DNA of 64,000 nucleotides from Bugula neritina (GCA_964035545.1 OZ037768.1:23469319-23533318), one strand, 5' to 3'. Counted from the stretch's first letter, positions 757 through 57,200 are shown. Made by a program: numbers and translations. Notes: generated from the letters alone by a model not told the origin.

Positions 757-3700
757 CTGGAGGATTGAGTAGTTCTTCGTAGAGCTTCTGATTGGCTTTC
801 CTTGACTGCCACAACATCTTCACCTTATCAACCAGTTCATACTTCTCCTTGCAGCCTTTATAGTCGACTAAGTTACGTACTAGAATAGTCTTCAGCTGTT
901 TCACTGAGAGGCTCTCCAATTCGCTGTCGGAGTCGAAATCCGTGACGGAAATCTTACTGGGGTCGGGAGTCTGAAATACATAATATATGTCAGAACACCA
1001 CAACTCCAAGTCACCGAATATTACAAAACTGATACAATACAACATAACAGCCATTGAAACTCTCCACGATATTACTTGCATACAACATTAATTGAACAAA
1101 ACATCTCAACATAAGTCAATATTCTATGAACATTTACAAGAAAGCATTTGCTTTTAGTGAAGCGTTTCCATAAAGACATTGTGATGTCATGATGTAGACT
1201 CAGTACCAGTTTAGATTCAGAGTCTGCGGTTCGAGAGAGTATAGAGGCCTCCCGACTTTGGTCCCCGGATGTGAGTACAGGATGGTCAGCTCGTGAGTCG
1301 ATCACTGGAGGGTGGTCAGGTGAGTCGGCAGGGTGAACTCTCTGATTCGACTACAACACCAAACATATGCTGTTCTTAGACTATATTCTCTCAACAGGGT
1401 AGAAGGAATGGCAGGGTGTATGTGAAGGACAGGGTAGAAGGACAGGGTTCATATGAAGGGGAGGGTAGAAGGACATGGTTTATATGAGAGAAAAAGTAAA
1501 TCTACTCCAACAATGAACTATGATATGATATAACCAATTTTAGTTCTGGTGTATTTCGGTCATGAAAATCTCCTGGAGTCTGCAATGTTTCTGATTAAAA
1601 GACCTGTTAGGTAGTCACCATAACTATCTAACTTTTCACTACTAACCCTCTTTCCCCACCTCAACATAATTTTGTATTGAGAACATTATGTACAGTTTAA
1701 ACGTAGCACCAAAATTAATTACAAATTATTTTATGATGAATTACTATATCAATTTGAATATTACAGAAATAAAACCATGTAAATATTAAAGTCACAGCAC
1801 CAGAAATTAAATGTTTTCCTATCTTTTGTGAGAGTTGACTGAGTTCACTTCTAACCAGAGCAACCTGAAGACATCCTCTGAAAAGAAGTTATACAGGATT
1901 CTAAATCCCCATTCAGTAATTCTCTCACAGTTTGAGATTTACTACTCTGAACAACATAGTGTGCACAGCAAAACATACTTCAATGTAGGAATATCTAGCA
2001 AAGGCAAAATTTAATCCCGGAAATAGTAGCTGCAGGAAAGTTGGAACGGTTATCGCCCCCCTCGCCTACATACCTGAAAGTCACAACCAAAGCAACACCA
2101 CATCATGTGATAGCCGCATGGCGGGTAAAGTTAGAGACTAATATCCACAGAAAGAGTGGACAGAGCAGTTGAGTTGAGGGTTGTGTTTGAGATAATACTA
2201 GTATAGTATAAACTACTACTAATACCGCATCAGCTATAACGTAGCCCAAATATGCAGTCACAATATAGTCCAAGTATATATGAAGCGACAATGTAGTCTG
2301 AGTATATATGCAGCTACAATATAGTCCAAGTATAGAGCCCTGTGTGACAACAGCGTACAGTAAAGCCGGAGTAGAACACAGTATACTGTAACTAGAGAGT
2401 TGATAGTAGCAGTAGTAACCCTGCGCAAGGCGAGCAAGGCAAACGTTTACATGCAGCCTATAGAAACCAATCAACAAAACTTTAAATGAATAATACATGA
2501 GAGTAAAACTCTATTGTTTGAGGGACACTGGCAGAGCCTCCTCATCGCGCCTGTTGACACTAGCGTAAAACTTAGGTTATGAATATAAAAGCAAACTAAT
2601 GATTATAATCTATACGTAGAGGTAACATTACGGTTCAATTACTTTGTCAATAATCAATGAATAGCGACATGTTATCTATATGTTCATAATATGGTGAGGG
2701 TGTTAGTAAGTCTAATTGAATTTACCTTCTACTGTTACAAGCTGTACAACAACTCTACATGCATACATAATTCACGAGGCAATATTTTAACAAGTACTCA
2801 ATAAAGCCAACAACCGTGTTATGATTAAATCTAGGTAGAGATAAAATAACTTTAACAATGCTGAGATGAAATTGTGAATTATGGCTTTAAACTGGAAATG
2901 GTCTGACATTGCCAAGTTTTAAAGTATCTGACTATATTAGTGTGTGAGTCATTTAGTAAGGTATATTCAGTAGGTAGAGCAATTTATTCTCAAGTATCAC
3001 AAAATGAAAAATTTTCAATAGAAAGGCAATTTCTTCATCCATTTCATCACTAGTTATTTACTATCACTTGGTAGAGTTTGCTGGAGCTTATGAGGATAGA
3101 GTCATGAAACATATCGGGGGCACAACTTCTATATTCTTGTGCATGTGCGTGAATATCACAGTGTTACATGGCAATACATGGTATTGTTACATAACATTAA
3201 ATATAATATTGTGGTACAAAGCAACCATTTCAATATAATGTTAGTTTTATAAATCCTGTTCTTCAAAAATTGAGGTTTATTAAAGAAAGATTTGCATTTT
3301 TTACATTAACTTGTAGTAATTTTTAAAATATGAAATGAAGGATTATATCTTGTACATTTATCATTACACTACATTTACCAGTAGGTAACTCTGTTAACTC
3401 GGCACACCAGAGAACATTAAGGGCTACAGGAAATAGGGGTGGACATAACTCATGCGGAACCACTTATATAGCTGTTAGATGACAGCTAATGGGTGATAAA
3501 TAGTTCATAACTGTAGAGGGGGAAGCATTATTTTCCTGGTAATAAATTGGCTTACCAACAATCATACGAGTTTTTATAAAACCAGGTGATGTGTTTACAC
3601 CTTCATGATTTTTAGCTAAAGTTCAATTAGACCAAGAAAGTTGTCTTACAGTATAGAAGCAACTCGGACAAAATTATTGTCCCGATTGACAAATTTTCAG

Positions 3701-9659: not shown

Positions 9660-12600
9660 CTATACAATAGACTCATCATTATCTAGCAATTTCAGCACTT
9701 GTTCCAGTTTTAGGTTAGCTTCTTCAAAGGAAGGAAACTTCCCAATAGATCTCCTGGCCGTTTCATATGGCTTTTGGTAATGTGCCAGGGAGTCGGGCAG
9801 CGTGCTGTAATCTTCATGAGTTGATCTCCTCAGCTCCTCTTCATACGACCCGTCAAAGTACTGATTAGACATGGCGCTCTTCACTCCTTCGTCATCCAAA
9901 ACTGCGAAACTGTGAACGCTGCTAGAGTCGCTATCGATAGAGGACGACTCCTGGAGCAGACGTTTGGCCGAAAGTTTTATAGAGCCGGAGAGAACGCGTC
10001 TGTGTCTCATGGCTACTGGAGAAGCAGACGTGCTGCTGCATGCACTTTCAGATTTGCCAGTTTCCAGAGAGTAGACGCCATTTGTTATTATGCTAGTATC
10101 ATTTTCTAGTGAGAAGGAGTTGTCTGCCCTGTCAGCTGTTGCATCAGTAACAGGTAGTTTACTTGTAGGCTGAGTGGATGGAAAGACGGTTATTTTGATT
10201 TCCGGGAAAGCTACAGGCTGGTCGACATCACGTAGAGAAGTGTCAATCATTTCTTCAGTGCAGTCAGCACCAGTACTAACAGTGATAGTATTAGTATCAC
10301 TAGCAGTTTCAGTACCAGCACTAACAGTGGTAGTCGTAGTATCACTAGCAGTAGCAGTATTAGTATCATCAGCAGTGGTAGTATTAGTATCACTAACAGT
10401 AGTATCACTAGCAGTATTGTTACTAGCAGTATTGTTACTAGTACTACTACTAGCAGTAGTATTGTTGGTAGTGGTAGAACTAGGGCTAATAGTTGTAGTC
10501 GAGGCGCACACGGTGGCACTCGGTGAGATCAATGGAGTTAATTTCCTGTTACTTTTGGTTTCAGATCTGACTGGTGGGAATGAGATTATAATTTCAGCTT
10601 CTTGCTTATAGTCTATATTATTATTTTTAGTAGCCTTAGATTGATCACAAGGTGGCGGGGTGGGGCTTTCAGAGCCCACACCCGACTCACGAGTTCCGAG
10701 AGCTTTGCAAGCTTCTTTTTCTCGCCGGCTCTTGTGTATGTCTTCACTTATTGCCTCCAGGTTGCTAAGAGCTTTAGAGTAAAGGCTTTTAGTTGAATTG
10801 ATGTCACTCTGAAGTTTTTCAATAACCTGCTTTTGATTCTCTAAACTCGTGTGGAAGTTTGCCTTCATCTCATAATAAGGCCTACAATATAAAAATAATA
10901 TCAGTGGCAATAAGTTGGAATTGTCTGATCGAAAGCTTTACATAAAAAGTGAATAGCTTTCAAATGACAAAATAATTCATATTTATAGGTTTGTTTTTTA
11001 GACAAGCAGATAAATATTGACTGTGATTGTCAGTAATAACTAAAATATTGCTAAAATTTATTGAAATTATAAAAAGTGGTGGATCCAACACCCCCTGTAC
11101 AAATAACTTAGTAACACAGCGTGGGTCAGCCCCTGTTCACATTCACCATCAGCTACTGGAAGTGGTGTCGCTGTAATATTCATCTACCTGGGAAGGGAGC
11201 TAAACTCAGCTCCCCCTAACCACTAACCAGGAAATACTAAGGCTATCTACTACTTCACAATGCTAAGAAAGTGATAAGGGGGACAACCCTTTCCCAGACT
11301 AGTTGCATGAGTAGCTGTATCATAGACTCGGAGTACATACTTGGATTTGGAAATGGACCTTTTATGGTTCATATACTGAGTATTCACTTCCTGTTGTATG
11401 TCTGCATAGAGTTTGGCTGTCCTCTGATTCTCCCCCTCACTTATAACTCTCTCCCTCTCTGCATCCATCACCTACACATGTGTGAAATACTCTGTAGTAT
11501 TATATTATATACCAATGTATAACCTTAACAATAAATTATTGCGTTCAACTGTACAAAATACAGTTGATTGTGTAAAAAAATACCAGGGTAATATAAAAGC
11601 CTGCTGTGAAAAAACATGGCCATTTTACATCTTCGTCTTTTTATAATTTTTTTGCAAAATTCATTTAAATAATCATTTTTTTTCAAAACTGAGAAGCTTT
11701 GGTTAGCTCAGTCATTAGAAAATTATGTATCGAATAGCACGTGTGTATTTCTGCATAAAACTAGTGGCAGGTCTAATTTACCAAGCAAAACATCTTATGA
11801 CAGTATGTCTCAATAAGCATATATTCAAGAGAAGGGTCTCAATGTCATACATACATTAAGGCATTAAGGTGTGCTATTATGACTGAACAAAAACAATTTA
11901 GTTTGGGAGTTGTCAGTCTTTTTTAAACTAGCACAACTCTAAATGCTACAATGGCTGCTGAAGGACTCTAAAAATTCACAATTTAGTATATTTTTGAGCC
12001 TAATCTAAAGATGTATAATATAATTTTTATAAGAGGGTACCCATAGTAACAGCAAAAGTACTATTCATTCCCATTAAGTACTTTTCCACTAATTTCAAAA
12101 GGTGCTAACTTCTAACACTTGAAGCTGTATGTACTAGATAACAAGACATGAAGATGTGCACGTTGTGTAGTGGTGGGTGTAAGTAGAAGATACTAGTACC
12201 TATTATATGCTGAATATCACCACAACAATAGTCTATCCAGTATTAACAGTTAGTCATAGAGATAGAGAGCAGTAAAACAATCCACTATTGTCTACTCTAG
12301 TAAACACAAGTGCAATTGAGTTAGTCATTCCTTCAACTTGAAATTCAGTTTTCCCAATTTGTTGAGAGAGTTGAATAACTGTGAGTTGAACTGCTGTGAG
12401 TTAAATAACTGTGAATGTAATCCCTGTGAGTTTAAAGTGAAGAAACAGTAGCAAGTAATCCATATAATAGTAATAAATGCCACCAGCATATTCAGGCTGA
12501 GGACATCTTAAATTAAGTGAAAACACTAGCAGAATTAACTACAAAGCAACAATGTCAAATAACTAACCCAGTAATTCTATTTTTAATTTATTTCCCTAAA

Positions 12601-19147: not shown

Positions 19148-32469
<13,322 letters not shown>

Positions 32470-35311
32470 TATTGCATCACATCCTGTTAGTGAAGTACAC
32501 AACGTCCCTAAAGTGCATACATTTACATAGTCACTTGTGCAGTTATATGTACCAGTTTCTGCTGGATTTCTATTTGATATAAATAAATAAATTCTGCAAC
32601 ATTTTAAAGTAATTGTTTTTCTTAGATGTAAATGAGCATCCTTCAAGTTACGGCAACTTTATTATGTTTTGACTTTAACTCTGACTATTCAATAGAGGAT
32701 AGACTAACAATAATTTATTGAATAATATTCCAATAATAAGTAGGAAAACGATTAACAAAATAAATTCACGATATATATTGTCTACAACTATAAGAATCAG
32801 ACTACTTGAATATGACAAGTGACAGCTAAGTGCAACAGTCTAGCTATTGTAAGCTCAATAGTAAGAAAGCTCAAGTAGCTGTACATGTTATAAGGTGAAG
32901 GTCAAGTTGTGGTCACTAGATTTACTACAATCGACTTGAAGCAATCGACTCTTTCAACAGAGATGTGTTCTCAAGTTATTTCTATTGCTATATTTAAATG
33001 CAAAAAATAAGAATTTCTGCAATTTAGTGTTCAGAAATATATTTTCATTACACTACAAAAAAACCGCTTTTGGTGTTGGGAAGCTAATAGCAAAATGTTG
33101 ATGACAAATGCTCACAGGGTGTAAGGTTATGTCATGTTACAATAATCAGTCAGTAATAATCAATTGAAGTTATGAATTAGAATGCACTGAGCTATACAAA
33201 TATGGAATGCGAGCCTCTTCAGCCCCAACATCACGTGATAACAATAGCTGCATGATGCAACCTTCTACTACTGCTCAGCCGGCGGAAGTGCAATATTGAG
33301 ACCATATGACACACACAACATCCGTATTTTCACTGCAACTTCTATATTAAGTTGAAGGTGTGTACATCCTATGATCACGGGTCATGGCTTATTAACTTTA
33401 AATTCTAAAGAATAGTTAAACCAAGGGGGAGTTTAAACTAGTTAGTTGACTTTACTGGTAGGAAATGTTTAGCGATGTTATTGTGCATCACCTCCTGATT
33501 GATGCTTAAAATATTATTGTTTGTAGCGTGTCTAGAGCTAATACACATATTGTTTTCAATTAACAATATTGTACTAGTGTAAAAATATTTTGTCAGCTTT
33601 ATCAAAACCATAATTTTTATTTGAAACTTTTAGCATCTTATGTGTACATTTATAACAATCAATTGCAGTTGTGCGATAAGTTACATTAAAAAATAAAATA
33701 TATAGTATAATAATATTTTTTGTTTTTATACAATTTTGGATCAATTTCACATTCTGTTTTGTGCCAAAACATGTAGCTCATATATTGCCACAGTGTTTTA
33801 ATGTCTAGAAACATGGGCATATTATAGTTTAAATAACATGTTTAAACTGATACAATGCACTTCAAACCTTATACTGCTGGTGATAGTATTTTTCACACTA
33901 GTTCTAAATTTTTTATAAGTAGTTTTACATTGTTTTTCTTTATACCCTAGCTGTTTCCATTCTATGGCCCATGCATTAAAGCCTGTATTTGCAGCACCGG
34001 TTTTTATTTAAAAGTTTCGTTTTCAACTAAAAGTACCACAAATATATTTAAGATGTTATACTAAAATATTATTTACTCTTTAATGTGATAGGAGTATAGA
34101 TTATAATGATATAATTTCATGGGGTGGTGCTAAATGTGGCCCTAATTAGGCGTTGCTAAGCAACACTCACCAAACACTTTACTAGAACAGATACAGATTC
34201 ACTGAAGTAACATAATGCTGGAGGAAAGGCTCCATTAACCAAGCTAATCAGAGCCATTTAAACTCATTCTCGTGACTTGAGTGTAAATACCGCCTACACA
34301 TTTCGACCAGGATTCCATTTTGGTGATTTCTAGGCGTAGGTGGTAGTTCACATCACGCTTCATTAGACAGTTTCTAGGTTTCTCGTATTTATCAACAGGT
34401 GGAACGACTAAATGCTAGGCAGGGGGTAATCATTTGCTGCATAGGCAACAATAGTTTCACAAATAAACTGAATTCTGTTGCTCTGCGTAGACTAATAACA
34501 ATGTCTCATTTAAACAATTATATAACAGACGTTATACAATAATTTTGTTAAAAGTTTTCTGATAATTTTCATCGATTTTTAGGTGAGGTGTACATGACTA
34601 TGCACACAATAAGCAACAAAACGTTTAGGAATATCTTTGGAGTTGCACTCTCATTGCAAGCTACTTAGTTTTTAATTTGTCAAGCTGTTAATTATTGGTA
34701 ATAAGTTTTGTATAAAGGACTAGTAAAGCTTATCAAAATATAAAAGTTCAGTTATTTTGCATATCACATAGTTTGACTGTAGCCGCTTGATATGTGTTCT
34801 AAGATTCTGTAAAATTGCTGTACAATTCACACTTACAATAATAAAGTAGTTTTTATATAGTAGTTTATTACAAATATATTCAACATATAAATTAGAGGAA
34901 TTGCAAATTGCTGTGACACCGGGATTGGGGTTGACCAAATTTGGTCGTAAACAATATAACAAGAAAAAACAACATAAATATATCAGTTACTTGCTAAAAC
35001 TTCAACAAAAAACATAACAATAAATATTAACCATTTTTGCTATATTGGTTTTTCAAATCTTCTGCTGATACTTGGTTATAATTTTATAAATTATTTTAAA
35101 TATATTTCTAAGTATAAAAACAATATTAATACAAAAAGGTTTGACTGGCAAATAATATAGTTACGTAGAGTAATTCTAACAAAAGTCATTTTAATTATGC
35201 GAGTCAACACCAAACTTTTACACTAATACATTTTTTTTAACTTTGCATTAGAAATCATATTATGAAATTGTTGAAATCGAGTGTTTCAAAGAACAGCGTT
35301 ACTTCTAGAGA

Positions 35312-36750
35312 TTATGTCAGCATTGCGTACGCCAATAGTCTGCAAAGTCGAAGGCTCCTTCCTTTGCACACGGGATTTTCATTGTAGTTGTTACTCGATC
35401 TCGCCATCTTGGGGTAAGCAGCGTAGCTCAGCACCTGTCTCTTTGCTCTCACAGCTGGCAGGTTGGCTCTTTGCATTAGAGAGGTCAGAATTAGAGACTC
35501 CTCCGCAGGAGCTAAAATGAAATTATTCAAATGATCAATGCAGACAAACTAAGCAAAATAATTAAATAATTCCGCAATATTTCATTTTGCAATACAATAT
35601 TTAAATCAATTTAATAAATTAATAGTTGTTGAAATAGCTTGAAACTTGCCAAAATTTACAAAATTAAAAGAAAATTGCTACAGAAGTAATTGTGAAATGT
35701 TGTTTTGATTTCAAGTTGTATTTTAAGAGTTCTTTTTGATAAATTTCAAAGTAAAATTTCTGCTCTGACTAAAATCAATAAAGGTGGTCGCAGAAGCTTA
35801 CCAGGGCTGCTGGGTAAAGACATCCCTGCTGCCGGCTGCAGGAGTTTGGAGAGCAGAAGAGATAAGATCAGAATAGACCTAAATCTAGCGGTCTTCGTAC
35901 TTCCACAGGGGTTCCAGGATCTGCCCGTTTTGGGTGCCCTGGTATCCGTTGGGCATGATGCGTTTCCATATACTGGTTTGGTTTCATTGAGAACCTCCAT
36001 TCTTTTAAACTAAAATAAAACATAATTTACAATGAATGACAGATGTTTAATAATGTAATCAACACAATTCAAATTGCTTTGATATATAAAAAAATTATAA
36101 TCCAATATATTATATTAATTTTTCAATGTGAAATACAATGTTATTTAATTATAACCAGCCAGGCAATGTAAATAAATGTTGGTTGTTTATAGCAATGGCA
36201 AATTAGATGAAGTTTATAACTGCATGTTGTAAGCAAAAACTATAAAAACATAAATTATTAAATACGACAGGGTGCAGATATGCGAAATGTACTGTATATG
36301 TGGGCTAAAACAAGCGTTGGTTTTGCATAAATTAGTCTTATTTTGATTTTCATCTCCCAATGGAATTGTCAATCAATTCCAAGAATTACTCTCTAAAGGT
36401 GAGGCACTGAGTTTTTAGTTTGGAGAATAAATTAGCTATTAAAATCAGCTGTAGGCTACAAGCGTTTATTCTAACACTTGCAGTTATATTCTATATAAAA
36501 CAGTTGCTATAGCTAGAGTAGAAGAAAAAATTGTTCATTCCAACCCCAGAAGCTTTTGTGCCCTTTACAGAAATGACTTTGAGTATCACAAAAAGCTGCA
36601 AGTTAATTGAAAAATAAATGTTGAAGATACATAAAGCAAGATTTGTGATAAGAAGGCAGCTTCCAAAAAAATAAAAAAATTTTAAATTAAATACAGTTTA
36701 AAGTAATAATTTATTTCTAGAAAAGCAGTAAATATTCTTACCTGCAACAT
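35312..36750 (-). CDS. Putative secreted peptide (neuropeptide/hormone-like) precursor, 138 aa
   Basis: Exons 36750-36742 (ATG TTG CAG|gtaaga), 36009-35802 (..CCT G|gtaagc) and 35511-35312 join in frame: MLQFKRMEVL...ARFRSILILSLLLSKLLQPAAG-MSLPSSPAPAEESLILTSLMQRANLPAVRAKR-QVLSYAAYPKMARSSNNYNENPVCKGRSLRLCRLLAYAMLT*. Basic n-region, hydrophobic h-region, AxG-type cleavage site, furin-type RAKR, N-terminal Gln and a Cys pair. Confidence 0.8.
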
Positions 36751-36834
36751 GCTATTATAACTTTTCTTGTGATGTTCTAAGCTAATTATAATCCTTTGGT
36801 TTAGCTGCACAGTAGCACTAAGAACTGAACAGAT

Positions 36835-36930
36835 GAGTGATTTTTACATAAATTAACTTTGTTTATATATACATGAATGCATGTGCTTTGACTCAATGAC
36901 GTCATGTGACTAGCAGTACGATTGACCAAT
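36835..36930 (-). promoter_or_regulatory. Core promoter of the peptide-precursor gene: Inr-like TCACTC, TATA box, adjacent AP-1 and CRE, CCAAT
   Basis: TATATAAA (minus strand) 36869-36862; Inr-like TCACTC about 30 nt downstream (36840-36835); TGACTCA 36889-36895 directly abutting the perfect palindrome ATGACGTCAT 36896-36905; CCAAT 36926-36930; further TGAGTCA at 37059-37065 and 37978-37984. Confidence 0.7.
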
Positions 36931-39288: not shown

Positions 39289-42200
39289 TTACTCCTCATC
39301 ACTAGAATCACTCTCTATCTTCTCCCCCATGATGTTCTCCCCCATGTCGTCCGTGCCGTCCCGGCTGTTATCTACTAGTCTGAGAGACACGACAGATAGC
39401 GAGTCCTTGAGACCAAAGCACAAGAGTTGTCCGTCCATAGCGACAGTCATGGCACTGATGCGAGTGTCAGGAGTGTACACAGCTAACACTACTCCCTTAT
39501 CTAAGTCCCACATAGAGATATCACCAGCGTATATTATAGCCTTGCTCCCACCTTTCAGTATGAAGATCTTATTCATTCCAAACTGAAAGTTCATTCCTTG
39601 GTAGCCATGGATCTTACGCAGTGAGCTCTTTTTAAAGGGCTCCCAGATACGCAGCTCACAGTTTCCTTTACCAAACAGAACTCGTTGAGCGTCGTCAGAG
39701 ATACCGATGGCGCAGACATCTTTCTCATTCTTTAGCCTCTTTCTCACCGTCCCCTCAAAGCAGTCCCACAGTGTCACGTAGCTCACCTACAAACATGGAA
39801 ACATGTTATGAACTGGGATGACACACTCTTGAACAACATATTAGAGCATGGTATATCTGCCATAACAGCAACCACCCTTCAGTAGCCTTCGAGTTAAAAG
39901 TTCCCAACCTTGGAAATATAATCTTCCCTAATTAGTTTCAAGTTTGTGACTTATCAAATGTTGTCAACTAGTTTCAATGCTGTACTTTGGTTCATTATAC
40001 TCAGTTTATACAACTATTAATATAATCATGACCAAGTCACTGAAAGAAGAAGCCTTAAGGAGTAGGGGGGCTTCTATTAAAACCTGGTATTCTATTTATA
40101 GCTGCCTTTTTACAAGCTGAAAAAGATGGACTAACTTCATTAAGAAACAATTTGCTGACATCAAAGATGTGTTTCATCAGATATGTTAAAGATATGTTAA
40201 TAGTAATGGTCATATGCTAATTATCTATACATGTAACTTTTCTTCTAACTTCTTCTCACATCAATTTTGAACTCTATCTATATATTACATATGCAGATTA
40301 TTCAATTTAATTTACAGCATAAACAAGAAACTTATATTTCAGATTGCATTACTTCTACAATTACAGAGAATTACAAATTTATAACCATGAGCTTCAAAAT
40401 GCAAACCATCCATGTTTCATCATATAGCAGCTACGTCACATGACCTAACAAAATGATTTCAGCATTTCTAAATTTTGGAACTCCATTTGAATGTCACGTT
40501 GTCAAAGTGATGCCATACTAGATTAATTACTTCAAGACATCCACTCAGTGCATGTTACTTAACCTCAGTTTAAAAGTCAAGGTTTAGTCTTGAACCAAAA
40601 TTGTTATAAATTCACCCACTCAACTTTCACTCCAAACCAAACAATCAAAAGTTACTTAAATGATTCAAATTGAAGCCGTAGACACATTATACATAGATTG
40701 CAATAGTCAGTATATAATATATCTCAAAGCACTTATTTTGGGCTAGAAATATAAGTTACTTGTAGCTATGGTTGCTAGGATACCGGTATACATATAAATA
40801 AACATGTATACCCAGTAAAAGATATTAATTAAGAAAATTAGCATTGACCAATATCTTTAGTTTAATGGAAGTGACTTGGTGTAAGCACTGAGACACTATC
40901 ATATTAGACGCTGTCACTACATTGCTCTATGCTTTCTATAATTTGCTAATTATTGCTAAGTGATAGCTGAAAGCTATTTCTAATTCACAATCAAAATTAT
41001 GAAAGTCGCTCCCACCATTGATACAAGAATAGTATTGCTTTTTCCTCAAACTTGAAGTTTTTTTTGAAATTCTATTGATAACTAAATTTCAATTAAAATA
41101 GATAAACTGTTCCAAGTGTAGCTTTCAGAAATTCATACATTGACTGCTATTTTAAACGATGCAGTCTACAAGATATGACATCATACCATGAACTAACCAA
41201 TAAGCTGCTTACCTTATCATCTTCATCGTAGTTTGTATGGACGAGAAAGCTGCCGTCGTATGTGAGGGCCGCGACGTAAAGATGTAGCAGGGAGTTGTCA
41301 TTCTCTAGCGTCTGTACATGGTCTTTCTTTTCCATATCAAACACACAGAGATGGTGAGAGAAAAAGGAGGCAACTACAACTTTCTCATCACCTACAGTAG
41401 ACGTAGTAAATACTTTATTATGAAAAATACTACGCGAATAAATATGATCTATTTTCATGCAATAGATATAACATAAAAAATAATGACTTTTAATATAATA
41501 CGTTGAGTCAAATGTAATGTATATAATTTTGTATTAGTAATGAAACGCTAATTCAAATATATAGCAATGGAGCAGTGGGTAGATAAGTTGGTCTAGTGTT
41601 CAGGACCAGAGCATCATCAGTGAGGTCAGGAGAGGCACTCAATTACTCCTGTGTAACTGTTGATGTTCTCATATTGTAAGAATGGTTTGATGTAAATTCC
41701 ATAGTATTATTATCGTAGCATTTTTACAGAGTTTTGTGATCATAAAAAGTTTGTAATAATTATACAACATGAATAATGTAAAAAATTAAAACTCTAATAA
41801 GATAACAAATAATATGTGAAACAAACCGCTTAGTATGAACTGCTCGACTCCATTTTCTCTCTCTTTTCGCTTCTCTTCCATTTCCTTCAACTCTTCTTCC
41901 AATTGCAGCTCTCGTCTTTTCTGACGTTTCTCGGAGGACTCTGTCCGTCTGTCCCAGGGTGTCATCTTAGCAGTGTACTGCCTCTTTTTCATGTGAACCG
42001 AAGCTTCCTGGTTCAGATGGTTAGCAGTCATGTCTGACTTGGACTGAAACGTTGGCTTTATCCGATACGCAATCGTACCTGGAGTAGAACAAACTCGGTT
42101 TGTCTTTTCATCTTCAGATAACTTCGAAGCCATTTACAAAGTGAATTTAAAAACATTTTAGCCTATCTTTGTGAAAAGGCAAATACGCATTTAGCCAAAA

Positions 42201-45200: not shown

Positions 45201-48200
45201 CGAGAAGTCCAACTCGAGGTTGTAAGATCTGCAGAAGATAACCAAATTCAGTCAAGTTTTCAACTAAACTTGAACAATAGTATAGTTGAAATTTATAGCT
45301 TTAGGTCCACAATAAACATTGTGAAGAAGAATGTCACCTCATAGTGTTGACTCCAATCAAACAGCAGACGAGCACCTTGGTATTCTGGCTAATCGCAATC
45401 TTGGCATAGTCGTCGAACTCACTGAAGGAGAAGAGACATTGGGAGGTGTTGATGTCCCAAACCCTGACACAGCTGGTTTCTGAGGTCACAATCACCTGGT
45501 TCTCTAAGGCTACTAGAATCTACACATGCAAATGAAGAAAGATTAACTTAAATTATACAAACAATCTTTATTTGTTAACTGGTAGATTTAAGGGAGCTTT
45601 GTGATTTTCAACCAATTGGTCAACTTTACGTGATGAGTTTTAAGGATTAAGTATTCAATTACTATATGTTTGTATCTTTTATTGAGTTGTCTATGCGCAG
45701 CACTGAAAACATAAATTCTACATTGAAATTTATCTCTTCAAATCAGACGTATAGTAAAGTCATGTGCTTGTCTCTAAGGAGGTATAAATTATCTCCCCGC
45801 TAAGAGAAATATAATTATTATGAAGTTGTTCAACACAATGCAAGTGCCAAAATACACAACTTTGCAACTATAGAAGATATAATTGTCTGTTTCTCTTTAA
45901 ATACAGCTCTTGTATCAAAATATTGATTCAAAATCTAAAAATAGCAAGTTCCTTGTTCCCTTAAAACTATCTTCGTTCCCTCTGTGCCAATTACCTACCG
46001 AATGTGATGGATTACTGCAACTAAGTTTCAATTCTACTAATTAGTTTTCGATTTCACACAATAAACAGGCAATTCATTGTTTACATTCTCAATAAAAAGC
46101 AAAGTAACAGCTGCAATGTTATATGACTATATACTATATTGTAGCACATCACACTACGTTATGGGATATTATATGAAATTACTTTAAATTATATTATATT
46201 ATACTAATTAACTACAGTATACAATATTATGTTATATTATATGACATTGTAATATATTATATAATATTATATTTTAATATTACACCATATATATTATACT
46301 TTATTATTTTATATTACGTCATATTATATTACATTGTATTATATTTTAATATTATATTATATTTTATGCTGTTGTATTATATTATATTATATTTCATTAT
46401 GTTATATTATTATATGAATAATGCTGGCGGAGCATTAGCCTACATTCTAGTTAAAGCTGTATCAATAAGAAGGGTGGGCAAAGCAGAGTACCCTATTCTA
46501 TAGACATACACACAAACCTGCAGAACGTCTTTGCCAACTCCAGGTATAGTCTTAGTAACTTTCCCAGATCTCAAGTCCCACATCTTGATGGTATTATCGA
46601 GGGATGAGGAAACGCCCCGCATGCCTTCTGAAGTTAGACCAATGGCCGTGATCTCAGCCGTATGTCCGACAAGAATGTCCGACAAAGCACCACCTAGAGA
46701 AAGAAACCTTGATCTCTTATGATAAATGTAACAGCATTGTATATAACACCACCTTGATCTCTGTACCATGACTACGTGTACAAGTTTCTTGTAAGAGCAA
46801 TGAAGTAAATACGGAGCCCAGTGTAAAGGCTACACGTCGTATAATGATGTGGCGGGGGTGTAGGTAGGAGTGTAGGTGGGGCGTAGGTGGGGGAATAGCT
46901 GGGGTGTAGGAAGAGAGGAACGTACCTGGAGGGGTGAGGCAGGTGATGGAGGGGTAGAAGGTGGGTATAGATGACCTGCTGATCTGAGCCATTAGGGGGT
47001 GACAGGCAGGATAGACCTTGGGGTCAGCTGAGGTCACCGGAACATCCTGAAAGGAGACAAACAGCAGACGTATAGCAGCTGATGTATAGTAGTATACATA
47101 TAGTAATATACATATAATAATATACGTAGGATAGTATACATATAGTAATATACATATAACAATATATATAATAGTATACATATAATAATACACATATAAT
47201 AATATACATATAAATATATGCATATAATAGTATACATATAATATACATATAGTAATATATATAATAATACACATATAATAGTATACATATAATATATATA
47301 TAGTAATATACATATAATAATATACATATAGTAATATATATAATAATATACATATAGTAATATATATAATAATATACATATAGTAATATATATAATAATA
47401 TACATATAAATACCTTCATGATCAAACTCCTAAGTCTGCCAGAAAGCTGAGAGCCGAGTTGTTTTGGGTCTTTCTCAAGTACTACTCTGCTAAGCTGAAA
47501 TGTCTCAAGTAATATGTTCAAGTCCTTATCTTTAGGCTCAATAGATATTGCCAAGTAGAAGTCATCAAATATGGTTCGTATCCCAGAGCCACATAGCTTG
47601 GCCAACAACCACTCATAATTACACAAACACTCAGACTTTAGCATGTCAAACTGGTTGGAGTTAATGAAGTGGTACGGTAACTCGTTCAACGCTCTCTTAT
47701 TGTACACAATGCTAGTCGTTCCGTCTTCTTTTTCCAGCTCGTAGGTGAGGTTTTGTGATGCCACATATCGCGGAACACCGTCTTCGTTGTTGGGAGTTGG
47801 CTTATTTTTCCCGCTCCACATTCCAGTGAAATATTCTGCCATTGCTTTGTGGTATGAAGGAGCCTAAACAGTCATGTTATATATTCATATAAAGATAAAA
47901 CTCTTGCGTACTGTGCACAGTAATTGTGTTGATTGTGTAGTTGAAGTGTGTTACAAACAGCAAACTTTAAAGGGTTGCAATCATCTTTATTCTGTCAAAT
48001 ATTTGATGAGTAGAGAATGCATATCAGGTAAGTAAAATTATGCTGAATGCATCCTTGTTGATGTTTATTAACTAAAAGTGGCTCTTTAGCTTAATTAAGT
48101 GTTATTTCTAAATTTTGCGCTGAAGAAATGTGACCATTGTATTTAAAATGGGACAACTACCCTAAACTATATACATAAACCAAATAAAACTAAATTATAA

Positions 48201-51200
48201 TGCAAAATAAAATAAGACAAAGCAATGGTCTATCATATCCCTTGCTTATAAATTAGATACAAAGTTATAAATAAATCTAGCTGCGCTTCATTGTCACGTT
48301 CTGATTGCCCAAGATAGTTTGAATTTACAAGCCCTGTGGGAGTAATCACCACACTGCAGTAATGAGCAGACGATTCTGGTTAGATATTTATTTTGTATAC
48401 AAATAGACCCACACAGTTGTTATGTAATTATGTAATTATATGCATTATGTATGTATATGTATGTTAAAAAAGGATCTTCAGATGGGATTGTAAATAAAAC
48501 TTTATCACTTTACTGCCTGCAAAGTTTTAATAAACACTTATCACTTACTCTGTCACACTATTTACTCTGTCACACTACTCACTCTGTCACATGCTACTCA
48601 CTCTGTCACACTACTCACTCTGTCACACTACTCACTCTGTCACACGCTACTCACTCTGTCACACTACTTACTCTGTCACACTACTCACTCTGTCACATGC
48701 TACTCACTCTGTCACACTACTCACTCTGTCACATGCTACTCACTCTGTCACATGCTACTCACTCTGTCACACTACTCACTCTGTCACACTACTCACTCTG
48801 TCACACTACTTACTCTGTCACACTACTCACTCTGTCACACTACTCACTCTGTCACACTACTCACCCTGTCACACTACTTACTCTGTCCCGCTGTAAGAGA
48901 TATCTCTCGGCAGCAGCCTCATGATACTGAGTGTGTGACCATTGGATAGTCTTTAGTCCGTCTGCTGCCAATTCTGTTACATAACTTTTCAAGTCTTGCC
49001 TCAGCCGAATGAGCAATGCAGGAGGACATCTTCTAATCTCCAACTACAAGAAAAAATGTTTCAATTGCTATTTCTGAATAGTTCTACAGGAGTTATCTAT
49101 CCATATTTCCCAGGCAAGCATTTCATAAACTATTAATGATGACCAAGAAAATAACTTTACTCGATCACTCAAAAGGTTACTTTAGTATTAGAGTGTTATA
49201 TACTTGAAACTGTGTATTAATGCAGAAATTACACCTGAAATGCTTTAAGTTTTCTAAGAATAATCACCTTGTACTGGACGCACAACTCCTCCATCACCAT
49301 GTCGTCCAATGAAATTAAGTCTTCCAGCTCATTGAATGTAACACCTTTTCGTGATGCTGTTATGTAGCCCAAAGCCCTTCTTACCAATGGCTCTCCGTGA
49401 TCTTTTTCCAAGCGGGCAAAAGCTACGGTAGCGACTCTACAAAAGGTATTCCTCAGATACAGGAAACAGGAAATGATCTTGCATGACTTCAAATCGATTT
49501 CAAATTTTCAATAAAAACCAACTTTTAAGTACAACTATCAAAGTTAAATCAACTTTGAGGTAAAGTTAACTTTTACTAGTTAATTGAGCAGAATTTGACT
49601 ACCTTTTGACAGCAGAGGCCAGCTTGTAGTTTTCTGGAAGAAGGTAGCTGGACCATTGAATAGCCTCGTGGAAAGCCGTCTGCAGAAAGAGGGGGTTGGG
49701 ACAGTCTTTGTATGCCTTCATTACCGTGTTGTACTGGTCGTCTGTGAGCGTGCGATTGGCTGAGCTTAGCCAATGAGACATGATTACTGCTGCATCCTCA
49801 GCCTGCAAATAATTTCCAAAATTTTAACAATATTTTTACATTGATGGTAATTATTGGCTAAGAATAAATACTTCCTCAATTTGGAATGAGTTTTTGAAAA
49901 ACAACCATGATGACTTATTGCTTTTTATAACTAAATGATAAAGAGTATACATATAATTACTTATAGAAAACTAGACTGGTGATAAAGAGTATACATATAG
50001 CCAATTGTTTAATATTAAATATACAACATAGGACTAACTGTTAAACAGTGAAGAAATGCTATAAAGAGTATACATACAAGTACCTAATAACTATTAGTTA
50101 AAGACTAAAGAGTATACATGAAAACCCGACTTACTGGCAGTTTTTCCACTTCCAGAAAGTTCTTCTCCATTTTACCCCATAACTTCTTGGCGGCTTCAAG
50201 TACTACCATTTTCTCTTCAGGTTGGCAGGAGAAGATAACTTTAACATGGGGAGGCAACTCTTTAGGCATCCATGGCAGTTTCCTTGCATCATGCTCATCT
50301 ACAATGTATGACATGTTTATATTATATAATTCAGTTTAAACTATAGACAGATGTCAGCTTACAGAGCTGAAACGTTGTTATGGGAAAGATAAATGCTACA
50401 TGCCTTAATGTTGACTAAATTCTAAAGCAACAGACAGACTAACCTGTTGTGTACACAATATATAGCCAGCTAGAGTTTGTAATATAGACACTGACGCCAT
50501 TTACCAACCAATCATACAGCCAATAATGATATAACAGCATATTTTTACATCAAGAAAATAAATATATAATAGTATAGTATATAGTATAATAATATATAGT
50601 AGTATAACACTATATAATAGTATAGCATATAATATAGTAGTATTTAATGTAGTAGGATTTAGTATAATATGATAGTGCATATTATATAATATATTACATA
50701 ATTTACATAAATTGTATTAGCAAAGATGCCACATATTATACACATGAAAAGCACCTTACAGTTAGTATTACAAGCATGTTATTGGGAGTTATTCTCACCT
50801 GCTAGTTGGTCTACTGAGTCAATCACAATTATCAGTGGCTGATCAGCTGTTGCAAATTTTATTCTTTCAGAAAAATCATTCACTAATCCTCGATAACCCT
50901 GAAATATGTAAAGTATGTGATAAACTAAATTAAAAAATGGTAAAAGAAAAAATTTGATAAATGCAACATTATTTTATAGTAAATTTGAAATAAGTTTGGG
51001 TAAAATATTACCTGCAGTATAGACTAATTTAATTTTTTTAGAGGGAAGCATTGAGGAACTATAATAACTATTCCAAGTGGAAAATTGCTAAGAGATAGAA
51101 TTCAGGAGTGTTTAGAGTAAATTGGAAAGTTGTTACATAGTAGCTGAAAATTTCCAATAGGAAATAAATGCCTGTAAGGCGGGAAAGTTATTAGACAATT

Positions 51201-54200: not shown

Positions 54201-57200
54201 TCTTTTTGAGAAATAAGCTTATTTCTGTTGAATAACATTTCTCTATCTACAGTAGATTGAGAAATAGACATATAATTTTGTTTAATAATTCAACATAGAT
54301 TCAATTTGAATAGAGTCAGTAAACATTGTTCAACAAGCACATTATAATATTTGTTTTTGAAGACCAAATACATTCTATTTTGGCAGAATGAATACATACT
54401 GACCTTTGCTGACAAAAGGTAACATGCTGTATGACCTCCACATACAGATTTCTCTCATGAGGGTTTGTAGGAATTGTCTCCTTCTCCTCCTCAAACATCT
54501 CAGACAGACTCTTTCTCACCAGATGGTTGATTCTGTCCACCAGCTTCTCTAGATACAGCATGTGGTTCCGGAGTAGCTCCGGGGCAAACCCCTCTTTGAT
54601 CCAGTCCAACCCGAATGTCTCCCGGTTTGTCTTCGGCATCTAGACGGAGTTCGAATAGTTTGAAGCTCGGCAACTTATTTGTATTTACACTTGCACAGAG
54701 CTTTAGGTTTAACATACAATCTGTACTGCTAGGGGGGGGTAAAAGACTTGGAAGTATGTTGCTATTACAATTTACAACTGAGCTACTGTAGGATTATGAT
54801 AAATAAGTTTTATTGGGCACAGAACATGTTAGATAGTTGAGTAGTACAGAGAGAGGGAGGGAAATCAGTATATACATAAAACAGTAGCTATTGAACTGAA
54901 AGCTGTTCATAGTTTTTCCTCTCAAAGCTTGTCTAGCAATAATACAACACCTAATAATTATACTACACATCCAACCTTAAGAGGTTTTTGGTTTTAAACA
55001 TTTGAAATGTGTTAAATGTATCAATACAAATACTATGATAGTAATAATTTAGCTGCTACAGTACTTTGAAAGTCATTCCGTATAAAATAATTTTGCCCCT
55101 ACTGGGGTTTGAACCCAAGACCTCCGGCTTGCAGGCTAGCGCGCTAACCATTGCACCACAGGGACTACCAGGTAAACTCAACCCTATAACACTCAAGAAT
55201 CAAAAACCAGTTAGTGAGTTACACAAGAAAGATGAAAAGAAATAAAAAGTTACCTCTCTGAAATTCTTTAGTTGTTCATTTAACTCTATCATTCGTAACT
55301 TTTTGGATTGTTCAGTCTCAATGAACTTTTGCGCCATCTCGTCTGCTTCATTGATTCCTTCAAACTGCTTTGTGAACCAGCAGATGCGGCCAGGAGAGAA
55401 CTGGTTGTGTCTAATACCAGCCTCGATCTCTAACTCTAGCACTGCAACAAATATGTCTTCGAAATAGTCACCACTCGTTACTTTTAGGTGCAGTAATGGA
55501 GAAACTTTTTGCCGAAATTTTTTTAATTTAGTTTATAAATTTCAGTTTTGGGCATGAGTAGAAAGAACATAAATTTATTACATTTTTTATTTAGAACACA
55601 GGCTTTTCACAATTTTTCTATTACTGCCCATCAATTGCTGGCTATATATATAGTCATTTGATCTATATACCTTATTATGCCAGCTATTATATTTTTTAGT
55701 CTTCTAAGTTTCTTATCAAAGCATAAGTACAAAATTTTTCGTTGACTACAAATTAGTAAATAAAGATCTCTTCTAATTATAACCAAATCTTTTGATTTGA
55801 AATTTTTCAAGGAAAGAACAATTATCTTTTCAGACAGAAGGAGATTTTTGATCTCATATGCAGTGTTTCTACAAATATCCCTTACATGACATGTGATATT
55901 TCTACAGATATCCCTTACATAACATGTGATATTTCTACAGATATCCCTTATATGACAGGTGATGTTTCTACAGATATCCCTTATATGACAGGTGATATTT
56001 CTACAGATATCCCTTACATGACATGTGATATTTCTACAGATATCCCTTACATGACATGTGGTATTTCTGCCACACATCTTCATCGGCTGATAGCTTAGAG
56101 TACTTCTGGAGAACAGAGAGAATGTTCAGAGCTGTCTCATTCCAAGATTTGGTAGCTGGAGCCTTTTTCTTTGGGTCTGTTTTATTGATGTCAGGAAACT
56201 TGGTGCTGAAAGAGAATGACATACCATATAACGGATGCTATCAGTTAGTTGTTAACTTTGGCCTTCAATATGCCAAATAAATTAGGAGTTTTTTCAATTT
56301 TTTACTAAGTAATTACTTTGGTATATCTAAGTTCAACAAACTAAGGTTAGAGGCAACTGTTTGTGTAATAAGCATATATTATAGTGAGTCATGTATGTGT
56401 AATAAGCATATGTTATAGTGAGTCATGTATGTGTAATAAGCATATGTTATAGTGAGTCATGGTGTGTAATAAGCATATATTATAGTGAGTCATGTATGTG
56501 TAATAAGCATATATTATAGTGAGTCATGTATGTGTAATAAGCATATGTTATAGTGAGTCATGTATGTGTAATAAGCATATGTTATAGTGAGTCATGGTGT
56601 GTAATAAGCATATGTTATAGTGAGTCATGTATGTGTAATAAGCATATATTATAGTGAGTCATGTATGTGTAATAAGCATATGTTATAGTGAGTCATGTAT
56701 GTGTAATAAGCATATGTTATAGTGAGTCATGGTGTGTAATAAGCATATATTATAGTGAGTCATGGTGTGTAATAAGCATATATTATAGTGAGTCATGTAT
56801 GTGTAATAAGCATATATTATAGTGAGTCATGTATGTGTAATAAGCATATGTTATAGTGAGTTATGGTGTGTAATAAGCATATGTTATAGTGAGTCATGGT
56901 GTGTAATAAGCAAATATTCTAGTGAGTCATGGGTGTGTAATAAGCATATATTATAGTGAGTCATGGTGTGTAATAAGCATATGTTATAGTGAGTCATGGG
57001 TGTGTAATAAGCATATATTCTAGAGAGTCATGTTTGTGTAATAAGCATATGTTATAGTGAGTCATATATGTGTAATAAGCATATGTTATAGTGAGTTATG
57101 GTGTGTAATAAGCATATTATGTTATAATGAGTCATGGTGTGTAATAAGCATATATTATAGTGAGTCATGGGTGTGTACAGCCAACACCTAACAAACCTAA

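Follow-up and report, generated by a model that had tools for sequence, protein, structure and literature searches.

Whether three short segments on the minus strand of the 64-kb stretch of Bugula DNA analysed here (the window) form one gene, and whether this gene encodes the precursor of a secreted peptide, is the question raised by this locus. Little is known of the peptides that bryozoans use for signalling. The first-pass annotation had proposed that three exons join in frame into a 138-residue protein, and sequence reading and translation upheld both the join and the coordinates: the precursor gene starts with an ATG at 36750 on the minus strand, and its three exons, connected through GT/AG sites, give 138 codons in frame (Table 1). 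This ATG is the first one located 3' of a TATA-like box, with an in-frame stop upstream of it, and the start of exon 1 near 36840 was deduced from the position of that box. Exon 2 encodes a hydrophilic N-region with two cysteine residues and two N-x-S/T sequons, followed by a TGRSW motif, a hydrophobic segment and the residues A-A-G. The G+C content is 50% in exons 2 and 3, 27% and 24% in the two introns and 26% in the 3' flank. No paralogue of exon 2 or exon 3 was found in the window's own genome, which indicates a single-copy gene.

Table 1. Features of the Bugula peptide precursor gene in the window and exons of its probable counterpart on contig L004.
Feature	Position	Strand	Details
Putative core promoter	36862..36930	-	ATTGG 36930-36926; CRE TGACGTCA 36904-36897; TATA-like TATATATAAA 36871-36862
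Exon 1	36742..36840	-	predicted 5' UTR plus ATG TTG CAG (36750-36742); donor gtaaga at 36741, phase 0
Intron 1		-	732 bases; acceptor ttttatttag ending 36010
Exon 2	36009-35802	-	69 codons plus 1 base; donor G/gtaagc at 35801, phase 1
Hydrophobic core	35839..35874	-	12 residues (residues 49-60); signal-peptide-like h-region
Intron 2		-	290 bases; acceptor cattttag ending 35512
Exon 3	35511-35312	-	includes TAA stop 35314-35312
RAKR	35438..35449	-	furin/prohormone-convertase-type site; predicted cleavage
Predicted 41-residue C-terminal peptide	35315..35437	-	N-terminal Gln; internal K-M-A-R 35410-35399
C-x7-C ring	35342..35368	-	Cys codons 35368-35366 and 35344-35342
Probable 3' UTR	34864..35311	-	ends at AATAAA signal 34869-34864; transcript extent predicted
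L004 exon 1	2529 (first ATG after TATA)		18 codons ending CAG/gtatgt, phase 0
L004 exon 2	2686-2881		ends A/gtaagt, phase 1
L004 exon 3	3041-3336		after acceptor ttttcattgcag

The putative promoter contains a full palindromic CRE, TGACGTCA, which occurs once in the window compared to 0.39 occurrences expected and is located 26 bases 5' of the TATA box. The CRE and the TATA box, which are consensus matches only, suggest a cAMP- or activity-dependent transcription under a CREB/ATF-type control.

The coding potential of exon 3 was examined by comparison with a sibling species. The exon-3 word search gave one ORF (P0001) on a 2356-base contig (L002, JGI sample 3300003318), which reaches from the last part of intron 2 through exon 3 into the 3' flank. 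The two sequences differ by 24 substitutions in 195 coding bases with no indel, and several indels are present in the flanks. Eight of the 24 changes are non-synonymous, whereas 20,000 placements of these changes gave an expectation of 16.6 (P = 1.5e-4); the dN/dS is 0.14. The dN/dS is 0.10 for the 41-residue peptide, and the last 21 codons (35377-35315), which begin with N-P-V-C, exhibited six synonymous and no non-synonymous changes (P = 2.5e-4). By this measure, the ring plus its tail, formed by these last 21 residues, is the most constrained part of the precursor. The RAKR site is identical in the sibling, the K-M-A-R site is replaced by K-M-T-R and the C-x7-C spacing is the same. For calibration of the same species pair, the neighbouring WD40 exon (L011, same JGI sample) showed a dS of 0.27 and an omega of 0.03; this dS indicates that the two siblings are well diverged. 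Judged against this neighbour, the precursor protein appears to evolve about seven times faster, yet it is clearly constrained.

The other two minus-strand frames carry stops, and the antisense ORF has only 40 codons in L002. The plus-strand ORFs that cover the exons were rejected as mirror ORFs: the substitutions fit the minus-strand frame, and the sibling has a shorter ORF opposite exon 3. Elsewhere in the window, microsatellites (CT, TA/TG) and longer tandem repeats (27650-27750, 29300-29700, 46700-47400, 48450-48900 and 55630-56080) produce long spurious ORFs in several frames.

The 3' flank was compared for the same pair (window 34500-35311, minus strand, and L002:282-1100). The identity is 88-95% at aligned sites, the AATAAA signal is kept, and a 42-base indel separates the window from L002 at about 34948-34989. 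At synonymous sites of the peptide and WD40 exons, the same two species differ by 23-33%. This reflects either constraint on the 3' UTR and flank or a higher mutation rate of the G+C-rich coding sites than of their A+T-rich surroundings.

Two observations would be compatible with the absence of a functional coding gene, the ORFs being joined by chance or the transcript being non-coding. The single sequencing run containing this stretch is genomic DNA (its contigs are colinear with the genome, introns included), and a codon-usage score did not separate the precursor exons from other stop-free stretches, its training set being six long window ORFs taken as coding, four of which match Pfam. Against this explanation, to which we give very little credence, stand the frame-specific substitutions (P about 1e-4) without indels in exon 3, the islands of higher G+C content bounded by splice sites and a counterpart of the same structure at the same chromosomal spot, described below. 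Since purifying selection is frame-specific and a gene of the same build occupies the same place in another species, the observation is more than chance: judged from these comparisons, the small three-exon Bugula gene is real and kept by selection.

The precursor gene is flanked by the last exon of a NACHT/WD40-type gene (39788-39293, minus strand) and by the last PheRS-alpha exons (32462-31189). Related contigs were found by a search with the WD40 exon of the window. Three of them represent one more distant, bryozoan-like species: L004 (ENA ERZ1740065, 6.2 kb) and the near-identical L005 and L006 (Logan SRR3401492, SRR22824308), with a G+C content of 44-45% and a DNA identity to the window of 75-79% in shared exons. 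In this species (L004, L005 and L006), both flanking genes are present 3.4 kb apart with their order and orientation kept, and a gene of the same build lies between them on the same strand (Table 1). Upstream of this gene, at 2371-2408, the promoter elements follow in the same order: ATTGG, then a CRE-like TGACATCA, then TATAAAAA. The L004 product, of about 182 residues, exhibits a 51-residue N-region with two cysteine residues, N-x-S/T sequons being found in both genera, a TGKSW motif where Bugula has TGRSW, and a hydrophobic core also of 12 residues followed by S-A-A. Its basic sites are RRVKR, QQRR, KRR and RR, with KRR at the place of RAKR and RRVKR and QQRR upstream of KRR. The last exon encodes a C-x7-C ring followed by x-E-L-L-W, the corresponding residues in Bugula being R-L-L-A-Y.

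The similarity between the two genera is carried by exon 2, with a Smith-Waterman score of 41 compared to 22.9 ± 4.4 for shuffled sequences (P = 0.004). The similarity of exon 3 to L004 exon 3 was not significant (shuffle P = 0.31; pairwise E = 1.6), the best local alignment being the ring. The L004 gene is thus a probable orthologue on the basis of gene order, exon number, intron phases, promoter layout and exon-2 similarity, and not of the peptide itself. The long N-terminal region with its two cysteine residues, pointed out as notable in the first-pass annotation, recurs in this counterpart. It had also been expected that RxKR, the cysteine spacing and the intron phases would be conserved in related genomes; this was borne out in L004 for the spacing and for phases 0 and 1, and in the sibling for RAKR, but the L004 site is KRR.

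Contigs of three further species gave no counterpart. L008, L009 and L010 carry the WD40 exon and end before the expected place of the gene. In L007, from the species with 54% identity, the shared gene order is lost after the WD40 gene and no candidate peptide gene was seen. As far as can be seen, the gene is restricted so far to bugulid-like bryozoans.

Several other features of the region were recorded. The NACHT/WD40-repeat gene, directly upstream of the peptide gene, is large and multi-exon (39289 to about 51000, minus strand, the last exon ending at 39289) with Pfam beta-propeller matches, and related exons are found in at least 5 other assemblies with 54-98% identity; the colinear contig L007 shows an AAA_16/ATPase_2 match farther upstream. 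L007 is the most distant of the related contigs, and a reverse-transcriptase (RVT_1) ORF (L007:11797-12276) closely follows its WD40 gene, at the place where synteny with the window ends. The PheRS-alpha (tRNA-synt_2d) exons are convergent with the peptide gene. Also on the minus strand of the window are a rififylin/RNF34-like exon (746-1081) and a long exon of SH3BP5 (9660-10910), which includes a low-complexity stretch rich in Thr, Ser and Asn. A tRNA-like element at 55094-55165 (minus strand), which matches the Rfam tRNA family with 42 bits and for which ARAGORN names no anticodon, could be either a repeat derived from a tRNA or a degenerate tRNA.

We then considered what the gene would encode. 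All the features that had been read from the protein, namely the hydrophobic stretch, the acidic pro-part, RAKR, the N-terminal Gln, K-M-A-R, C-x7-C and the hydrophobic tail, were found in the translation, and the gene looks like that of a secreted-peptide precursor, secretion being predicted. The hydrophobic core starts at residue 49, i.e. after about 48 residues, which is atypical for a signal peptide. It is bordered by basic residues on the N side and by the small A-A-G on the C side, and its Kyte-Doolittle mean reaches a maximum of 2.93 over 9 residues and is only 1.54 over 19 residues, so that the core is short for a membrane span. The arrangement would correspond to a signal peptide's h- and c-regions, with an unusually long n-region before them. 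This n-region is probably translated, since its ATG is, in both genera, the earliest one downstream of the TATA box and stays in frame across the phase-0 intron.

The same long N-region before the core in both genera, with the first ATG in frame, would also fit a small membrane-anchored or otherwise non-secreted protein, in which the approximately 48 residues form a functional domain, the basic sites are unprocessed and the hydrophobic segment is a signal anchor or no ER signal at all. We regard such a protein as quite unlikely: the core has just 12 residues and a low mean over 19 residues, small residues fitting a signal-peptidase site follow it in both species, furin-type sites recur at corresponding places in Bugula and L004, and the strongest constraint is found in the C-terminal ring and not in the N-region.

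Our preferred reading, to which we give about an even chance, is that this real single-copy gene encodes a 138-residue secretory prepropeptide whose ring peptide is most likely an intercellular signal (hormone or neuropeptide) of an unnamed family. Entry of the chain into the ER would depend on segment 49-60, which would serve as the core of a signal peptide of unusual length or, with lower probability, as a short signal anchor. The small A-A-G residues would fit a signal-peptidase site, the C-terminal part then being luminal, and furin or a prohormone convertase would cut after RAKR and free the C-terminal 41 residues. The freed peptide would form a Cys-x7-Cys disulfide ring with a hydrophobic tail, and a ring peptide of 28 residues would result if K-M-A-R were cut as well; function would reside in the ring and its tail. 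The calculated masses of the linear products are about 4667 Da (average) for the 41 residues and about 3188 Da for the 28 residues, to be lowered by 2 Da for the disulfide and, in the longer product, by about 17 Da for pGlu. In the Bugula peptide, the ring residues are K-G-R-S-L-R-L, with Val before Cys1, R-L after Cys2 and 9 residues in all following Cys2. The N-terminus may carry a pyroglutamate, as had been suggested earlier: the N-terminal Gln is present in Bugula, but L004 has a Trp after KRR and the Gln is not kept.

The composition of the peptide raises the alternative of a host-defence (antimicrobial) peptide precursor, in which a signal segment together with a slightly acidic pro-piece would keep a cationic ring peptide inactive until convertase cleavage. 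The 41 residues have a computed charge of +4.7 and a pI of 9.8, the pro-part has a pI of 4.5, a hydrophobic tail follows the ring and the predicted peptide has no amidation signal, and many defence peptides are likewise cationic. Moreover, the prepro part is recognisable between genera and the mature part has diverged beyond recognition, a pattern typical of defence and toxin peptides; classical neuropeptides usually conserve the mature part, unlike here between genera. This pattern suits fast-evolving defence peptides or species-specific signals as well as a hormone. A defence function nevertheless appears unlikely to us, although it deserves attention, because the mature part is the most constrained between siblings (omega 0.10, and 0 in the last 21 codons), the gene is single-copy with no tandem family, and a promoter with a CRE would be more usual in neuroendocrine genes. 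A gene whose mature end is under purifying selection and which lacks paralogues agrees more with a receptor ligand than with a defence-peptide family.

Within the preferred reading of an intercellular signal, a more specific proposal can be made, which as a whole we consider speculative and unlikely to hold in every part. The gene would belong to a bryozoan-specific hormone family characterized by an extension of about 50 residues with two cysteines before the ER core, a seven-residue ring with a hydrophobic tail, a CREB-type promoter and an orphan receptor; the extension would then be either a long bipartite signal peptide or part of a membrane-anchored pro-hormone shed by furin. If true, a conserved, lineage-restricted ring peptide would be a candidate for regulating the behaviour or settlement of larvae or the physiology of the colony. 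Bugula is a major fouling organism, and the ring peptide would be a ligand for receptor deorphanisation. The long pre-signal extension, present in two genera, is in itself a small cell-biological oddity. Orphan peptide precursors are common in invertebrate genomes, and the present gene, known here from sequence alone, is a good lead rather than a surprise.

Database searches, run exon by exon, were then used to look for known relatives. Pfam gave no family for exons 2 and 3. In the word-index protein search, exon 2 returned nothing and exon 3 only the sibling ORF P0001. A HMMER search of an exon-3 profile against 1.84 billion representative proteins retrieved only P0001 and a spurious repeat protein (P0002). 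Scans of metagenome contigs with exon 2 and with the exon-3 profile gave no match; L002 itself was absent from the second, so that these blanks carry no weight. The ESM Atlas, searched by features, gave no usable match, the PDB sequence search with the 41 residues gave nothing at E up to 10, and the nine-residue tail string had no match in a literature text search. A neuropeptide survey of Bugula described 11 precursors (PMC4990251), and its text contains neither the first five residues of the peptide nor RAKR. The earlier statement that the peptide matches no named family agrees with these searches and with the traits by which elevenin, AstC, SSRP-like and MCH-type peptides are defined.

A strongly diverged member of a named ring-peptide family (MCH-type, allatostatin-C/somatostatin-type or elevenin) would account for a precursor layout shared with MCH, SS and AstC, with a C-terminal ring peptide after a basic site, for the basic residue penultimate to Cys2, as in MCH-type peptides, and for the Arg after Cys2, as in elevenin. 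We consider this very unlikely. The ring of 7 differs from those of elevenin (8), AstC (6), protostome SSRP-like peptides (4), SS (10-15) and MCH (8-10), the WK motif, the Met or Ile after Cys1 and C-R-G are all absent, neither Pfam nor HMMER gave a match, and MCH-type peptides are known from deuterostomes only.

Elevenin has a C-x8-C ring (PMC10175484). It carries D before Cys1, P at position -2 of Cys2 and R-G after Cys2, and the peptide directly follows the signal peptide. The resemblance is that elevenin is a protostome ring peptide of about 20 residues with an Arg right after Cys2, a residue also found in Bugula. The differences are the 7 residues between the cysteines in the window, the sibling and L004 instead of 8, the Val before Cys1, R-L before and after Cys2 and the position of the peptide at the C-terminal end in Bugula.

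In AstC, SS and SSRP-like precursors, as in that of Bugula, the ring peptide is C-terminal and is preceded by a dibasic or R-x-K-R site. The C-x6-C ring of AstC has a core that is aromatic or rich in Asn, and 1-2 residues follow its Cys2, whereas the Bugula ring has 7 residues and is followed by 9. Insect AstC also has an N-terminal pGlu. The ring contains 4 residues in SSRP-like peptides and urotensin and 10-15 in somatostatin, with a W-K motif inside the ring; in contrast, the 41 residues of the Bugula peptide contain no Trp, and its ring of 7 has none of these core motifs. For SSRP-like peptides, genes of three exons have been described, the last of which encodes the peptide, as in Bugula.

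MCH-type peptides, known only in deuterostomes (vertebrates, echinoderms and hemichordates), have a ring of 8 (vertebrates) or 10 (ambulacrarians), in which Cys1 is followed by Met or Ile and the residue penultimate to Cys2 is basic. As in Bugula, where RAKR precedes the last 41 residues, their precursor is short with a single C-terminal ring peptide after a basic site, and the starfish peptide has 28 residues, the length of the Bugula K-M-A-R product. Bugula (R-L-C), unlike L004 (N-L-C), has the basic penultimate residue, and it differs from the MCH type by its ring of 7, the Lys after Cys1, the 9-residue tail after Cys2 and the lack of a Pfam Pro-MCH match.

ITM2B, the source of Bri23, and the teneurins, the source of TCAP, are membrane-anchored precursors from which a C-terminal peptide is shed at a furin site; Bri23 has a Cys pair, and TCAP has about 41 residues with an N-terminal Gln. 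If the hydrophobic core were an anchor, the Bugula product would resemble them as a type II protein releasing a short C-terminal peptide after furin cleavage. These proteins are large with BRICHOS or teneurin domains, whereas the Bugula protein has 138 residues and no known domain.

Finally, in the frog Rana-box peptides, thanatin and bactenecin, a signal, an acidic pro-piece and a basic site precede a cationic peptide with a C-terminal disulfide ring, a layout like that of Bugula with no sequence relation; the Bugula gene differs in being single-copy and under purifying selection between siblings. Although by the tests made it is a member of none of these families, the precursor would work, in its layout, like those of MCH, SS and AstC.
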